A DNA stretch of 64,000 nucleotides from Piromyces finnis finn (GCA_002104945.1 MCFH01000037.1:1-64000), one strand, 5' to 3'; shown: positions 39,970-51,798, counted from the stretch's first letter. Translations and numbers: made by a program. The notes: generated by a model not told the origin, from the sequence alone.

Positions 39970-42900
39970 CTATTGCTTTTCATTAATTTGCTTCAATATT
40001 TCATTTATCCATTCTTCTATTATATCTAATTCTTCATCTGGTTTTTGAACATCAAGTGTAGTGTATTTAAAGAAACGATGAGCCCCTAAACTTTCAAACT
40101 TTTCATCCATTAAACGAGCTGCTTCACAGAATTTCTGGCGCTTTGAATCACCTAATCCAAATACAGCATATTTCATATTTTCTAATCCAGCATTTTCTTT
40201 AGTAACTTCATTAAGTCTTTTCCAGAATTCTAAAGCATTTGGTGGGAAGGTACCTTTAAATGTGGAAGTAACAATAACAAGTGTTTTCATTTTTCTAAGG
40301 TCACTAAGTTGAATGCGATCAGCACTAAAAACATTAATATCAGTGAGGCCGGCTTCCTTTGCTTCATCAGAAAGCATTCCTGCTACATCTTGAGCATGTT
40401 CAGATTCAGTTCCAAAAATGATATTTAATTGGTTTTTACCATCATTGATTAACTTTCTTCTTCCGAAATCTTCTTTAATTTCACGAGTTTCAATATCAAT
40501 TAATGAATTTAGTAATTTTTCAGACCAGTTATTAATAAGATCACCTGGATTTTCATTATTTTCTATATCAACTTCAGAATATGGATAAAATTCGGTGGCT
40601 CCAAGTTTTTGGAATTGCTGATTTAATTGTTTAGCAGCAGCACAGAAGCTTTTTTTATTCTTATCCCCAACACCAAGAACTGAGTATTTAATTTTACTAA
40701 GATCTAATGTATCTTTTGATTTTTGAGAAAATTCCTTCCAAAAATCGACAGTATCTGGTGGGAAACCTCCATCAATAGTAGAAGTAATAAATATAATATT
40801 TTTCATTTTTGTAAGTTCTTCTACTTTAATAGTATCTGCTTCGTGACAATAAACAAATGGGAAGCCTGCATCCTTTGCATCAATAGTAACCATGCATGCG
40901 GTATCTTCTGTATGTGTCGTTTTTGTACCAAATATAACATGTAGTTCGGCTTGAAGATCACATTTTTTAATATTCTTTTGTTCCGATTCAATGTTAGATA
41001 AATCATTTTCTATTACAGGTCTTTCGGAGTCAATGAAAGCATTTATAATATTTTCAGACCATTCATAAATTAATTTCTTTGGATTGCTATTATTCTCAAC
41101 ATCTACTTCAGTGTATGGATAGAATTCGTTTGATTGAAGCTCTTGGAATTTTTGATTGATAGCTTTAGTAGCGATACAAAATCTTGGATTACCATTTTTA
41201 CCTAAACCAAGAACAGAATATTTAGTTTTGCTCATATTCAAGGTTTTAAATGTTTTTTTGGAGAAGTTTTCCCAGAAATCAAGAGCATCAGGTGGTAATA
41301 TACCTGCATATGTTGGAGCAATAAAGATTATATTTTTCATCGTATTAAGATCATCAACATTAACTTGGTTAGCTTCGTGTATATAGATATTTGAGATACC
41401 GGCTGTTTTTGCATCAGCAGCAACTGTAGTAGCAATATTTTTTGAATGATTAGCTTTAGTTCCATAAATAATATGAATCTCTGTTTGGAAATCACACTTT
41501 TGAATACGTCTTTCACCATTTTCTGGTTCATTTTCTTGAGCTTCTTTAGTACTAGATTCATTTGAAATTTCAGTAGCAGTATGAGTTTCTGATGGTACGG
41601 AATTATCACCACCATTATTTAAATTATTGAGCATATTTTGAATCCATTGATTAATAAATTCTTCTTGGTCTTTGTCACTTTGGTCATCGTATGTAGTATA
41701 TGGATAGAATCTTTTTCCGCCTAATTGTTCAAATTTTTCATTAACTAAACGTGCAGCTTCACAGAATTTAGTGTAGGCAGAATCACCTAAACCTAATACA
41801 GAGAATTTCATATCAGCTAAAGACATATTTTCTTTAGTAACTTTAGATAATCTTTTCCAAAATTCAATAGCATTTGGTGGGAATTCACCTTCACCAGAAG
41901 TAGAAGTAACAAAAGTAACATACTTCATTTTTTTAAGGTCATCTAAGCTTACATCATCAGCAGGATGAATATCTACTTTAAGAATTCCTGCATTTTGAGC
42001 ATCTTCAGAAATCATATCAGCTACAGCTTCACAAGTACCAGATTCAGTACCAAAAATAATATCTAATAATTGAACTGATTCATATTTTGGAGCTTCAGCA
42101 ACACTCTTTTTTTCGTCTGTTGTTTCATTTATATTAGGTTCACCACTATCACTTGTAGTTAAGCTTTTAAGGAATTTTTGAATCCATTGATTAACAAAAA
42201 CTTCTGGATCCATATCACTTTGTTCATCAAGGGTTGTGTATGGGAAAATTCTCTTTCCACCTAATTGTTCAAACTTTGTATTAACTAAACGAGCAGCTTC
42301 ACAGAACTTAGAATATGAAGAATCACCTAAACCTAATACAGTGAATTTAATATTAGTTAAAGAGGTATCTTCCTTGGTGGCCTTGGATAATCTATTCCAG
42401 AACTCCATAGCATTTGGTGGGAAGTCACCTTCACCAGAAGTTGAAGTAACAACGGTGACATATTCCATTTTTTTAAGATCGTCTAAACTTACACTATCTG
42501 CTGGATGAATAATAACCTCTGGAATACCAGCCTTTTGGGCATCTTCAGAAATCATATCAGCAACAGCTTCAGAAGAACCGGTTTCAGTACCAAAAATTAC
42601 ATCTAATAACTGTATATTAGATGTAATTTTTGGAGTTTCAGAAGATTCTACAGTTGATGGTTCAATTTCTGTTTCAATTTCTGTTTCAGTAACTACTTGT
42701 TCATCTTTTATTTCACTTTTCATTTCAGTAATTGTTGATTTATTTATTACTAATTCATGTTCTGGTTCTGAAACAGATAGTCTTAAAGCTTTCAAAATAG
42801 AATAAATATTTTCAATGTAGTTATCAATTTCTTTTTTAACTATAGTTTCATTTTCAGTATTTATTGTAGTGAAGTTAAAGAATCTTTTAGCCCCAAGTTC

Positions 42901-48900: not shown

Positions 48901-51798
48901 ATCAGGAATTTGGACCCTTTTTAAACTACTAATAGCTAAATCTACACACTTTTTATTCTTTTGAATGATATCAGAACCCTTACTTGCATATGTTTTATCA
49001 ATTGCATTTTTAATCAAATAAGTAGCTTCTTTATATGGAATAACTTTTGTAAGGTAAAAGAATACAGATTGCATAATCATATTAATACGTTCACCCAAAC
49101 CAATTTCATTTGCGATTTTATTTGCATCAATAACATAAAATTTTGGCATTTTTTCTGCTAATTGTTTCTTTACCCAATATGGAAGATGCTTATCAAGTTC
49201 TTCAATAGGCCAATCAGTATTTAAAACAAAAGTACCATTTGGTTTTAATTTGGATAAAACATCAAACTTTGAAATATAGCCTCTTAATAGTTTTTTAAAT
49301 AATATTATTTAAATTTCCAATTTAGTAATATTATTTTTTATTATAATTAGTTGATATGAATATAATATTTATTCAAGTGTTTTTTAAAAAATAAAATTTC
49401 ATTATTAAATTGATACTTTATATTTTAAATCAAAATTAGTTTAATACTTACGAATAATGAACAGCAATATAATCAGCAGATGTAATTAAATATGGAGCAT
49501 GAATTGGTTCTGGACCAAATCGTAAATGAGATGTAGTTATACCTCTACTTTTATGAGCACTGTATGAAAAGTAAGCTTGACCATATAAATCAGTATTATC
49601 TCCAATAATCTTAATAGCATCTTTATTAGCACCAACAGTACCATCTGAACCAAATCCCCAGAATTGACATTGGATAACACTGTTTCCAAGAGTATCGAAA
49701 TTTTTGTATGGTAATGAAAGATGAGTAACATCATCATCAATACCGACTGTAAACTTGCCCTTTGGTTCAGGAGAAGCTAAATTTTCGTATACAGCAATTG
49801 CCATACCAGGAGTAAAATCTTTAGATGCAATACCATAACGACCACCAATAATTCTTATTGGTCTTGATAATGGTTCAGAAAAAAGTGTAGTACAAACATC
49901 AGTGAAAAGTGGTTCACCAATACTACCATTTTCCTTACAGCGATCTAATACAGCAATACGTTCAACTGTAGAAGGTAAAGCTTCCAAGAAGTGTTTTTTT
50001 GACCATGGTCTAAATAAACGAACATTTAATACACCAGTTTTTCTTCCATAGTTTTGATTCAAAATTTCAGAGGCAGCTTGACAAACGTAAGAACCAGAAC
50101 CCATTATAACAATAACATCGGTAGCATCTTCTGGACCAGTATAATCAAAAAGATTATAACGTCTACCTACAGCAAAGTTTAATTTATTCATACAATCCTC
50201 TACTATATCTGGTACTCGATCATAATATTTATTAATTCCTTCAGCATTTTGGAAAAATATTTCTGGACCCTGTTCATTTATATATATATAATAAATTAAA
50301 GGAAATTAGTTAGTGTGATAACTTAAAAACTACGAAAATCCTTAATAATTATATATTATTATGTTTTATTTTTATATTTACTTGATTTGAACCCTTAGCA
50401 CTTGGATGAGTTGGATTTAAAGCTCTATTGCGGAAATGGTCAATTGCCGTTTGATCAACTAATGTTTTAATAACTTGATTAGATATCATTTTTATTTTTG
50501 AAATTTCATGACTTGTGCGAAAACCTTCAAAAAAGTGAACAAATGGTAAAGAACACTTATAAATATTTAATATATTTAATAATTGCAATTATACAATTAC
50601 ATTTAATATATTACAATATAAATGTATATGTTTAAATATATTTAATATAAAAAGAAAGATTTATTATTATTTTATTAAAATTGAAATATTTTTTATTTAA
50701 AATAATAATTAAAATATATATCTTACTTTAAATGTTGCCATTTGTGCAACTAATGCCATATCTAAAGAAGCTTGAACAGAATCTGAACAAAGCATATTCC
50801 AACCTGTAGAACGTGCAGCCATTACATCAGAATGATCACCAAATATTGAAAGAGCATGAGTAGAAACAGCCCTAGAAGCGACATGAAGAACACAAGGCAA
50901 TAATTCACCAGCTATCTTGTACATATTTGGTATCATTAATAAAAGACCTTGACTACTAGTGAAACTTGTACTTAAAGCACCAGCAGAAAGTGCACCATGT
51001 AACGCACCAGCAACACCTCCTTCACTTTCCATTTCAATGCTTTTAACAACATTTCCCCAAATATTTTTTTTATTATTAGCTGCCCAATTATCTATACATT
51101 CTGCCATAACAGATGATGGAGTAATTGGATATATAAAAGCAACATCATTTATACTATAAGCAATAGTTGCTGCAGCTTCATTTCCATCCATACATTTTTT
51201 TAATTTTTCTGTATTTTTATCAGTAATTAAAAATAATATTAATACATTTTACCTAACATTTAATATTTATTCATGAAAAGTGTTACCTTCTACTGATGTA
51301 CTATATTTTATTGATGGAATAGAATTATTTTCTATGCTTTTTTGATTAAAATTTGGTGATTGTAGGGAAGGATTATCTAATTTAGTTAAAAATGGTGAAA
51401 TAGTGTGTGCATTATTAACAGAAGTTGATAATGAATCTTTACATAAATTTAATGTAATTTTTGAAGAATTTAAATTTAAAATATTCTATTATAAAAAAAA
51501 AAAGAAAGAAAGAAATAAAATTAATATTAAAAATTTAAATATTTTAATTCCATTCAATAAAGAAAATTAAGTATGAATTTTATTTTATATTTTATATTTT
51601 ATTTCATTAAATGTATAATATATATATTATTCCATTAAATTATATAATTAATAAATTTTAAAAATACTTGTACACAATTATATAAAATTATTTTACAAAT
51701 ATATATCTCATTTATATTACCTTTAATACTGTGTAATTTGAGAGATTTGAAATCTTCAAATTTTTCAATCTCGTTGTTTTATGAATTAATGAACTCAT
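39970..51798 (-). CDS. PFO: Pyruvate:ferredoxin/flavodoxin oxidoreductase fused to 13 tandem flavodoxin-like domains, ~3646 aa, 7 exons
   Basis: Exons 51798-51721, 51485-51287, 51208-50727, 50555-50382, 50269-49452, 49282-46762 and 46638-39970, all GT-AG and frame-consistent. PFOR motifs: [88 protein letters not shown]. These are followed by 13 repeats of I(Y/F)GT..G / ST.G.G.FP / GLGD..Y..FC type. Confidence 0.9.
43948..44877. repeat. Two near-identical 402-bp blocks (43948-44349 and 44476-44877) encoding flavodoxin domains 6 and 5
   Basis: Offset 528 nt. Only two differences were seen, both synonymous. Confidence 0.9.

Follow-up and report, generated by a model that had tools for sequence, protein, structure and literature searches.

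The minus strand of a 64,000-nucleotide stretch of Piromyces finnis finn DNA (the window) carries two long open-frame blocks. At the end of the first (49308-46735), which contains PFOR domains, a Pfam Flavodoxin_1 match is broken off at profile position 129 of 143; the second (46638-39973) contains 12 complete Flavodoxin_1 matches. This arrangement raises the question of whether the flavodoxin repeats belong to the same protein as the PFOR and, if so, what a chain of such domains might do there.

Gene structure and transcript

The gene extends from 51798 to 39970 on the minus strand, on which all features described below are located. It comprises seven exons and encodes a predicted protein of 3,646 aa (~409 kDa), composed from the N- to the C-terminus of a basic extension of approximately 95 aa, a complete PFOR core and 13 flavodoxin-type (FMN) domains, after which the protein ends. 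Exon 1 (51721-51798) starts with the ATG at 51798 and contributes 26 codons to the Ser/Leu/Asn-rich extension. The remainder of the extension is encoded by exon 2 (51287-51485), which has GT-AG borders, fits in phase and is kept in the gene model of Piromyces sp. E2 (P0006). PFOR domain I (POR_N) is divided between exon 3 (50727-51208; Pfam POR_N, 184 bits; TIGR02176 positions 2-157, 266 bits) and exon 4 (50382-50555; POR_N profile positions 145-204), while exon 5 (49452-50269; Pfam PFOR_II and POR; TIGR02176 positions 218-486, 369 bits) encodes domain II and the start of domain III. Domains III to VI and most of the first flavodoxin domain (F01) reside on exon 6 (46762-49282; EKR; TIGR02176 positions 490-1166, 801 bits). 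Exon 7 (39970-46638) supplies the last helix of F01 and 12 further flavodoxin domains (12 Flavodoxin_1 stretches, 901 bits) and closes with a stop codon at 39972-39970.

The initial annotation had proposed that the repeat frame is not a separate gene and that a GT-AG intron of 123 nt joins it in frame to the PFOR in the middle of the first flavodoxin domain. Both proposals were confirmed. Intron 6 (46639-46761, GTAATT...TTAG) has a GC content of 11%, compared to ~30% in the exons, and splits F01 at profile position ~130. RNA contigs of ~6 kb from three runs (two studies; depth 35 to 42) matched 45900-46640 without differences and continued with 30 letters that are the exact reverse complement of the exon 6 end, which places the junction at 46762|46638 with two letters ambiguous. 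Beyond this junction the contigs reach ~4.2 kb into the PFOR; at their other end they stop at ~44818, where the near-identical F05/F06 repeat starts. For the rest of the array (39970-44800), fractions of 0.94-0.98 of the words were present in the same three runs. The RNA check covers the exon 6/7 junction, while exons 1 to 5 were deduced from GT-AG borders and phase, from homology and from the gene model of Piromyces sp. E2. The spliced F01 (aa 1299-1441) aligned unbroken to positions 3-148 of the seed domain. Together with the 12 matches in exon 7, this yields the 13 domains that had been counted, the last of them followed by the stop codon.

A division into two proteins, one consisting of the PFOR with the first flavodoxin domain and the other of the array, could arise from retention of intron 6, which contains an in-frame TAA at 46734-46732, or from an internal start at the ATG situated 39 nt into exon 7 (46599). 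Since rare isoforms are dropped from contigs, a minor intron-retaining form is possible. However, the spliced form is the one found in the contigs of all three runs, and without exon 7 F01 would be deprived of its last helix. An assembly artefact, on the other hand, is hard to reconcile with repeats that share only 24-53% identity, and the same layout with the intron at the same place recurs in five independent loci, one of them incomplete. Separate proteins or an artefact are therefore extremely improbable, and this reading is largely refuted already.

PFOR core and flavodoxin array

Pfam detected POR_N, PFOR_II, POR, EKR and two Fer4 domains in the gene. A phmmer search of the PDB with exon 6 gave E=1.6e-193 for 6CIN and 1.5e-176 for 1B0P, and residue-by-residue alignment with these two solved PFORs bore out the claim that the catalytic, TPP and three [4Fe-4S] motifs are intact. 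The catalytic residues lie in the exon 3 motifs YPITPSS (Thr), ESEGG (Glu) and HVASRAV (Arg). Exon 6 contains two ferredoxin-type CxxCxxCxxxCP motifs (48690-48652 and 48525-48490), the four cysteines of the third cluster (48336-48310, 48258-48229 and 47544-47521), which lie in a 15-residue motif and in SPCQLHG, and the TPP motif GDG...N (47865-47746), a ten-residue stretch followed by SNTGGQ. Three pieces covered positions 2-1166 of the NifJ-type family TIGR02176 with 266, 369 and 801 bits (family cut-off 911 bits); these scores were obtained piecewise and not on the spliced whole, exon 4 being outside that scan though identified as POR_N 145-204. The domain content expected at the outset was found as regards POR_N, POR, Fer4, 13 copies of Flavodoxin_1 and the lack of FAD_binding and NAD_binding domains. 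The exception was TPP_enzyme_C, which had no Pfam match at E<0.01 on the exon 6 piece, though the respective region aligned fully to the solved PFORs and to TIGR02176. Judged by its sequence, the PFOR core is thus complete and conserved, and the residues predicted to bind TPP, three [4Fe-4S] clusters and pyruvate are all present.

The domains of the array are less uniform than their number suggests. All CPR-type FMN loops (the phosphate loop G-T-x-x-G-x-S/T-E and GLGD-x-x-Y) are kept only in F01, F04, F07, F09 and F10. F01 (46582-47145, aa 1297-1443, interrupted by the intron) has a pI of 7.8. F04 (45013-45462), whose loops amount to 28 residues, was aligned to the FMN domain of human CPR (1B1C), and F07 (43333-43782) gave the best score to the FMN domain of Chromera PNO (109 bits). 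F09 and F10 (41623-42609) are 76% identical to each other and belong to the type that is most often duplicated, with two to five copies in other loci. Seven of the 13 domains (F03, F05, F06, F08 and F11 to F13) lack the stacking Tyr and/or the phosphate-loop Gly and therefore may bind no FMN. FMN binding by variant domains is nevertheless possible, because Ser/Thr-rich positions of the phosphate loop are kept. F02 (46069-46518; dN/dS 0.12), in which the Tyr is retained, has the variant loops GNEGGY and SIEDSSY, which are kept in its orthologues. The loops of F03 (45526-45981) are degraded in the P. finnis finn genome and canonical in the orthologues, and its dN/dS of 0.28-0.31 is the highest of the array. 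F05 and F06 (43921-44889) form a near-identical pair (430 of 441 nt) with variant loops that lack the stacking Tyr; a pair of almost identical domains is found in each locus. In F08 (42796-43239; dN/dS 0.16-0.22) the variant HGTENGL occurs and the GLG motif is replaced, and F11, F12 and F13 (39988-41481), each a variant type of its own, have a conserved His in their phosphate loops. Each of the non-canonical types possesses its own conserved variant loop.

The domains are connected by polar linkers of 21 to 62 aa. An AF2 model of F12-F13 displayed two flavodoxin folds and a hinge with pLDDT<50, and Foldseek retrieved with this model, as top matches, the FMN domains of NDOR1, iNOS and CysJ as well as flavodoxins (TM 0.8-0.87, normalised by target). 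The flavodoxin domains are acidic, the PFOR core is basic. That the protein has no NADPH-reductase module, as had been claimed, was corroborated by Pfam: neither FAD_binding_1 (PF00667) nor NAD_binding_1 (PF00175) was matched in the gene or in two downstream open reading frames, and the protein ends five aa past F13.

Conservation, location and published data

A search for the architecture in other Neocallimastigomycota, suggested by the initial annotation, revealed the same layout in four other complete loci with 14 to ~18 domains, among them Piromyces sp. E2, whose public gene model is truncated by an assembly gap and whose PFOR part is 89% identical. A fifth locus on a truncated contig has the same layout as far as it runs. 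In all five, the intron is at the same place in the first flavodoxin domain, and FAD_binding_1 and NAD_binding_1 had no match in the flanks. Approximately ten domain types follow each other in a conserved order (positional orthology), and orthologue comparison revealed that all domains are under purifying selection (dN/dS 0.06-0.31), F13 being among the most conserved of the array, even though whole domains have been gained and lost among the loci (13 to ~18 copies). By these comparisons the array is made up of some ten ancient paralogue types, which occur in the same order in related fungi. That less than half of these types have canonical FMN loops speaks against a plain row of identical carriers and thereby refines the suggestion of the initial annotation that the array may be an electron store, a relay or a scaffold feeding hydrogenase or the PFL activase.

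The N-terminal extension has a net charge of +6; its first acidic residue comes no earlier than position 43, and over its entire length it can be aligned with the start of the Piromyces sp. E2 protein model. For Neocallimastix lanati, a PFO of ~539 kDa has been reported and predicted to be mitochondrial (PMC8561657), and a Caecomyces churrovis protein designated 'PFOR and flavodoxin' was found in hydrogenosome fractions in which ferredoxin was barely detectable (PMC13556243). The conserved basic extension, the N. lanati prediction and the C. churrovis fractions together indicate that the enzyme is probably hydrogenosomal.

The view that a PFOR with a long tethered flavodoxin array is new holds in part. 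In the literature, including the N. lanati and C. churrovis papers (PMC8561657, PMC13556243), no description of the array was found. However, gene models of the protein are present in MycoCosm, its size in N. lanati and its occurrence in the hydrogenosome proteome are published, and a PFOR with one flavodoxin and no FAD/NADPH module exists in another eukaryote. The layout with 13 flavodoxins may explain why the role of PFOR in the hydrogen-producing organelles of these fungi has remained obscure.

Possible functions and relation to known systems

The explanation which we regard as likely is that a single gene encodes a PFOR that oxidises pyruvate and passes the electrons to its own tethered flavin chain, probably in the hydrogenosome, and that the protein is of PNO-like ancestry. 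The ancestor would have been a PNO-like protein or a PFOR-FMN fusion in which the FAD/NADPH module was lacking or became lost and the FMN domain was multiplied. Pyruvate would be oxidised at TPP and the electrons transferred via the three clusters to F01, from where collisions between the tethered acidic domains and the basic core could distribute them among the remaining domains that bind flavin (F04, F07, F09 and F10 at the least). These domains would then reduce an external acceptor, and soluble ferredoxin would not be needed. We infer this flow through the array from the sequence; the [FeFe] hydrogenase system and a radical-SAM PFL activase are candidate acceptors. For the conserved non-canonical types, specialised functions are probable, for example an altered potential, partner docking or spacing. 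In organelle fractions of C. churrovis, neither pyruvate:methyl viologen nor pyruvate:ferredoxin activity was detected, though the protein was present (PMC13556243). This counts against the explanation, as do the seven domains that may bind no FMN; with an ordinary, active PFOR core, reduction of methyl viologen would be expected.

The undetectable bulk PFO activity (PMC13556243) is in line with an enzyme that mainly serves radical-SAM activases, the PFL activating enzyme in particular, as a source of low-potential electrons instead of carrying the main flux towards hydrogen. In this case the tethered flavodoxins would be reduced by pyruvate and would in turn reduce the cluster of the activase, as free flavodoxin does in E. 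coli, where it mediates PFL activation (PMC5029806); the acceptor is the sole difference from the explanation given above. In these anaerobic gut fungi most of the pyruvate flux proceeds via PFL, and expression of PFO is ~100-fold lower (17 versus 1967 TPM; PMC8561657), which fits a low-flux helper role. The window contains five PFL genes or gene pieces around the gene, the nearest of them 5.8 kb upstream. However, gene neighbourhood is weak evidence in a eukaryote, and the PFL family has multiple members here; the short flanks of the five other loci contain no PFL, and a search of the window for an activase motif was negative. Moreover, an activase requires reductant merely in catalytic amounts, which leaves 13 to 18 domains unaccounted for. 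A pyruvate:flavodoxin oxidoreductase was reportedly implicated in the route of PFL activation by Knappe's group in 1982. On balance, a service to activases as the main role seems rather unlikely.

It is also conceivable that the FMN chain delivers its electrons to NAD(P)+ via a separately encoded FAD/NAD(P)H-binding protein, resulting in a net pyruvate:NADP+ oxidoreductase reaction. The FMN domains resemble those of PNO and are attached at the corresponding position, diflavin reductases can occur as separate FMN and FAD/NADPH parts, and on one metagenome contig several FMN domains precede a FAD/NADPH module. This contig, however, is non-fungal (52% GC) and has no PFOR on it, and as neither FAD_binding_1 nor NAD_binding_1 occurs in the gene, the downstream frames or the flanks of any fungal locus, the partner is hypothetical and such a split system very unlikely. 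About as little credit can be given to an array that is mostly redox-inactive, with non-canonical domains that have lost their flavin and serve as a flexible scaffold or spacer gathering partner enzymes around the PFOR, F01 being the sole carrier. The seven domains devoid of canonical FMN-loop residues and the flexible linkers are in line with it, and the conserved variant loops and the well-conserved F13 would suit binding surfaces. Against it stand F04, F07, F09 and F10, whose CPR-type FMN loops are complete in all loci, the frequent duplication of precisely the canonical F09/F10 type, and the phosphate-loop positions mentioned above, with which even variant domains might bind FMN.

Among known proteins, the PNOs of Euglena, Cryptosporidium and other protists are the closest relatives in layout, as in these a PFOR core of the homodimer type continues at its C-terminus directly into a CPR/CysJ-type FMN domain, at the position occupied by F01. 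The best non-fungal matches spanning the PFOR and the first flavodoxin domain were PNOs (C. felis KAF7456279.1 and Paramoeba), whose alignments run through F01 to query residue 839, and all 13 domains scored best against the FMN domain of Chromera PNO. A PFOR tree neither supported nor excluded the fungal clade as sister of the PNOs, so that descent from PNO is suggested by domain similarity and the shared fusion point. Contrary to the P. finnis finn protein with its 13 FMN-type domains, PNOs have a single one followed by FAD_binding_1 and NAD_binding_1 (PF00667 is present in P0128 and P0130); since the fungal protein lacks both reductase domains, NADP+ cannot be its direct acceptor. The uncharacterised protein KAL0207555.1 of Eukaryota sp. 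TZLM1-RC (P0139; 1,373 aa) likewise combines PFOR and flavodoxin without a FAD/NADPH module, but it has one flavodoxin domain, and this domain resembles the fungal ones less than the FMN domain of PNO does. With the bacterial NifJ-type PFORs of Desulfocurvibacter africanus (1B0P) and Moorella thermoacetica (6CIN) the fungal enzyme shares all catalytic domains and the ligands of TPP and the [4Fe-4S] clusters. While free ferredoxin or flavodoxin is the acceptor of the bacterial enzymes, the fungal protein has flavodoxin-type acceptors covalently attached and a targeting-like extension at its N-terminus. The C. churrovis orthologue (P0005) is labelled in the database as fungal assimilatory sulfite reductase, an enzyme that also has POR_N-like and flavodoxin pieces. 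The P. finnis finn gene, however, encodes neither the NIR_SIR hemoprotein domain nor a FAD/NADPH domain, and its PFOR core is complete, not vestigial. Tandem electron-carrier domains within one oxidoreductase-associated polypeptide are known from methanogen polyferredoxins (MvhB, FwdF), in which clusters at fixed distances form a compact iron-sulfur wire; the fungal array, by contrast, consists of flavin-type folds on flexible linkers that have diverged into distinct types. Carriers tethered by flexible linkers to one catalytic core are also represented by the lipoyl domains of PDH E2, itself part of a pyruvate-oxidising system, and by the tandem ACPs of PUFA synthases. These comprise one to nine acyl carriers that are usually near-identical, while the fungal domains are ordered and heterogeneous and about half of them are non-canonical.

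Gene model and the exon 6/7 junction

The PFOR gene is embedded in AT-rich DNA (GC content of the window 13-34%, exons approximately 30%, introns 8-17%) and is encoded on the minus strand, where five stop-free blocks carrying PFOR and flavodoxin domains were detected between 51248 and 39973. Pfam analysis of these domain-bearing blocks revealed POR_N, PFOR_II, POR, EKR and two Fer4 domains, then a Flavodoxin_1 match that breaks off at position 129 of the 143-position profile, and after it 12 complete Flavodoxin_1 matches. An N-terminal extension is made up of a sixth stop-free block (51485-51270) and a short exon 1. 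The gene model comprises seven exons (51798-51721, 51485-51287, 51208-50727, 50555-50382, 50269-49452, 49282-46762 and 46638-39970), all with GT-AG borders and consistent phase; the 3' junction of exon 6 and the 5' junction of exon 7 were seen in RNA contigs. Introns 1 to 5 are based on GT-AG borders, reading phase, PFOR homology and the model of Piromyces sp. E2, whose N-terminus aligns end to end with that of the window gene. The spliced coding sequence of 10,941 nt contains one stop, which is terminal, and the product has 3,646 amino acids (409.5 kDa).

Since intron 6 (46761-46639, 123 nt) contains an in-frame stop, splicing determines whether one protein or two are made. Three lines of evidence agree that PFOR and the array are one protein. 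The first flavodoxin domain (F01) runs unbroken across the junction (amino acids 1299-1441 aligned to seed positions 3-148; the exons meet at 1424/1425), and an intron is present at the same site of this domain, close to profile position 130, in all five related loci (L001-L005). Moreover, RNA contigs of 6,023-6,069 nt and a depth of 35-42, from three runs in two studies of the same organism, match 45900-46640 with zero differences, and their next 30 letters, read as the reverse complement, are identical to the end of exon 6. They extend 4,200-4,246 nt beyond the junction while the ATG of the spliced model is 4,272 nt away, and thus hold nearly the whole PFOR reading frame. Their other end at approximately 44818 coincides with the start of the near-identical domain pair F05/F06, a point at which short reads would not be expected to assemble further. 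Between 39970 and 44800, a fraction of 0.94-0.98 of the sampled words was present in the same RNA runs, showing that the remainder of the array is also transcribed into RNA. The in-frame joining of PFOR to the array inside the first flavodoxin domain, as proposed in the initial annotation, was thereby confirmed.

The PFOR core also agrees with that annotation, which had described its catalytic, TPP and three [4Fe-4S] motifs as intact. Exon 6 matched the PFOR structures from Moorella (6CIN, E=1.6e-193) and from D. africanus (1B0P, E=1.5e-176), and the alignments contain both ferredoxin-type cluster motifs, the four cysteines of the third cluster and the TPP motif GDG...N; exon 3 supplies the threonine, glutamate and arginine of domain I. 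Scans of exons 3, 5 and 6 against the NCBIfam equivalog TIGR02176 (1167 positions) reached from profile position 2 to 1166, and the summed scores of the pieces were far above the cut-off.

The flavodoxin array and its counterparts at other loci

The total of 13 flavodoxin domains (F01-F13), one split by the intron and 12 complete, stood as first counted, and so did the lack of an NADPH-reductase module, as neither the gene nor the sequence downstream contained an FAD- or NAD(P)H-binding domain. Each domain is 147-152 amino acids long, the polar linkers comprise 21-62 residues, and the protein ends five residues past F13. Pairwise identities range from 24 to 53%, apart from the pairs F05/F06 (98%), F09/F10 (76%) and F11/F12 (52%). 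Because the domains differ to this extent, an assembly artefact was ruled out. An AlphaFold model of F12-F13 showed the flavodoxin fold twice, connected by a hinge with a pLDDT below 50, and Foldseek matched this model to flavodoxins and to the FMN domains of NDOR1, iNOS and CysJ. F04 is in register with the FMN domain of human CPR, including the phosphate loop, the second loop and the stacking tyrosine in GLG-x-K-T-Y. According to their loops, F01, F04, F07, F09 and F10 are canonical, F02 kept the tyrosine alone, and F03, F05, F06, F08, F11, F12 and F13 are non-canonical. The loop motifs do not reveal a strict alternation of canonical and degenerate sites along F01-F13.

The same layout was found with 14 (L001), 17 (L004) and 17-18 domains (L002) on metagenome contigs and with 14 domains in Piromyces sp. 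E2 (L003), while L005 is an incomplete contig. In Piromyces sp. E2 (GCA_002157105.1, KZ150781.1, 15286-15419 and 15555-22850), the intron that follows the first flavodoxin domain contains an assembly N-gap. For this reason, the NCBI model PIROE2DRAFT_4541 ends as 'partial' after that domain; it also omits two conserved PFOR stretches. Of the array, an open frame of 2,432 codons that encodes 13 flavodoxin domains, only one model of 157 amino acids has been annotated. Hence, the gap-truncated public model can be corrected.

A tree of all domains resolved approximately ten positional orthology types common to all loci. Whole-domain duplication or loss is limited to a few types, namely the F09/F10 type with two to five copies and the F04 and F13 types with one or two. 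The F05 type forms a pair in every locus, whose copies are near-identical within a locus and 77-86% identical between loci, a pattern that points to recurrent gene conversion confined to the domain. In the window (43921-44889), 430 of 441 nucleotides of F05 and F06 are identical, and the similarity stops approximately 20 nt outside the domain.

The non-canonical domains might be regarded as decaying copies. However, dN/dS values between the window and L001 or L003 were 0.06-0.31 for every domain (0.08-0.22 for the non-canonical ones on which this reading was judged), the linkers evolve mostly faster than the domains, and the variant loop motifs are type-specific and kept across loci in each non-canonical type, so that decay was rejected. 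F13, though non-canonical, is even among the most conserved domains (74-80% identity over the deepest splits, compared to 83-89% for PFOR). The conserved order and the type-specific loops speak against a plain series of identical carriers, and point to domain types that may be specialised in potential, partner or spacing. F03 (45526-45981) has lost the canonical FMN loops which its orthologues in four other loci kept, and carries a three-residue insertion. With a dN/dS of 0.28-0.31, the highest of the array, this looks like lineage-specific relaxation of one domain.

Possible function and genomic neighbourhood

The role of PFO, as PFOR is called in this literature, in the hydrogenosomes of anaerobic fungi has been disputed for decades, with activity being seen only in some of the strains. 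The N. lanati PFO was predicted to be mitochondrial and showed low expression (17 TPM compared to 1,967 for PFL); its size of approximately 539 kDa was remarked on, and the model treats it as a conventional PFO linked to ferredoxin (Wilken et al. 2021, PMC8561657). In C. churrovis hydrogenosomes, the protein was detected while pyruvate:methyl viologen and pyruvate:ferredoxin activities were not, ferredoxin itself was barely detected, and the function was called unknown (2026, PMC13556243). A description of a flavodoxin array in the PFO of these fungi was not found in full-text literature searches. The observation is well supported, and both the architecture and its internal order appear to be new to the searchable literature. 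The claim that the architecture had not been known before therefore stands for the array, but not for the protein as such, which is contained in gene catalogues and whose size had already been noticed.

From the sequence we infer a function as follows. Pyruvate would be oxidised at the TPP site, and electrons would travel via the three clusters to F01, whose fusion site corresponds to that of the FMN domain of PNO (pyruvate:NADP+ oxidoreductase). The core is basic (pI 8.6) while the flexible chain is mostly acidic (pI 4.5-5.1), and this might let further flavin-binding domains collect electrons and pass them on, so that an external acceptor would be reduced without soluble ferredoxin. Nothing in the sequence of the core suggests a dead enzyme; the main point against a normally active core is that C. 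churrovis extracts did not reduce methyl viologen.

The classical candidate for the acceptor is the hydrogenase system. The PFL activase may be suggested as well, because PFL activation in E. coli uses flavodoxin (PMC5029806), the expression of the enzyme is low and five PFL genes are nearby in the window, although in a eukaryote such a neighbourhood is weak evidence. These genes or gene pieces, all of PFL-like plus Gly_radical content, are located at 178-1239 (+), 5132-7573 (-), 14610-16799 (+), 57646-59847 (-) and 61385-63586 (+), and PFL fragments at 8440-8619 and 10427-10825. The last two genes encode 100% identical proteins and are mutually inverted, the others being 68-99.8% identical to them. 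A CxxxCxxC[HNQ]N activase-type motif was not found in the 64-kb window, nor was PFL in the flanks of L001-L005, which are too short or gap-filled to judge whether the neighbourhood is conserved.

It is conceivable, though rather doubtful, that the ordered heterogeneous chain is a new built-in device for electron distribution, in which domain types tuned to different potentials or partners would allow one PFOR to supply a number of acceptors with electrons (hydrogenase/NuoEF, PFL activase, other radical-SAM or Fe-S assembly enzymes) without soluble ferredoxin. If so, the near-absence of ferredoxin from the C. churrovis hydrogenosome proteome and the failed PFO assays with ferredoxin as acceptor would be accounted for. 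If the enzyme carries its own 13 to approximately 18 domains, assays, metabolic models and arguments about localisation that assume a classical PFO coupled to ferredoxin have to be reconsidered, and the PFO debate becomes directly testable. A protein of 410 kDa also poses the question of organelle import.

Downstream of the PFOR gene, a gene at 34652-35987 (-) and 36953-37831 (-) is duplicated in the window and occupies the same position in L002 (18016-19633, 86% amino acid identity). It gave no Pfam match; Atlas features and structure point to a putative glycosyltransferase-like fold, and no link to PFOR is apparent. Strong GC skew (0.27-0.36) marks 28001-32000, which adjoins a 528-codon ORF with a TTG start (29227-30813, -) without a Pfam match, and an ALIX/BRO1 fragment lies close by at 31305-32177.

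Origin and comparison with known systems

In both protein searches, the best non-fungal matches that also span the first flavodoxin domain were PNOs, among them proteins of Cryptosporidium felis and Paramoeba that possess FAD_binding_1 and NAD_binding_1. The FMN domain of Chromera PNO was top-scoring for all 13 domains (46-109 bits), and sulfite reductase- and NOS-like FMN domains scored lower. In a maximum-likelihood tree of the PFOR part, the fungi form a long-stemmed clade at a fork that the tree does not resolve and that also holds PNOs, green-algal PFOs and a bacterial/Anaeramoeba group, so that no sister group is claimed. Descent from a PNO-like fusion is therefore likely but not proven.

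Other Neocallimastigomycota share the layout. None of the best 150 of 11,442 matches of an exhaustive protein search combined PFOR with several flavodoxin domains. Two word-index queries with the array, sized for proteins of up to 3,888 and 5,218 amino acids, detected no annotated model of full length in NCBI or UniRef, a metagenome scan with the exon 6 protein returned no further arrays (almost exclusively bacterial PFORs at 40-46% identity, and two short fungal pieces), and an ESM Atlas search with the array gave small single-domain flavodoxin clusters only.

Multiplied FMN domains were also seen on a contig with 52% GC that is not fungal-like (L006, JGI 3300060030, 418-5958 and 6210-7427), where one ORF contains six near-identical copies approximately 800 nt apart. 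The ORF begins like an NDOR1/Tah18-type diflavin reductase, FAD_binding_1 and NAD_binding_1 follow and PFOR is not visible; this is a second, independent case of FMN-domain multiplication, with the reductase module present. A metagenome protein among the top matches (P0134, ENA, 1,628 amino acids) has PFOR fused to Fer4_20 and Pyr_redox_2, a GltD/NfnB-like NAD(P)H module, and is predicted to represent another wiring of PFOR to pyridine nucleotide.

By its architecture, the gene represents a new variant within the PFOR/PNO family, and it is conserved in anaerobic gut fungi. Its array is an unusual natural case of an electron-carrier domain multiplied and diversified in one polypeptide, and bears on the evolution of PNO-type fusions. 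The eukaryote TZLM1-RC possesses a PFOR that likewise has no reductase module, but it carries a single flavodoxin domain whereas the fungal protein has 13.
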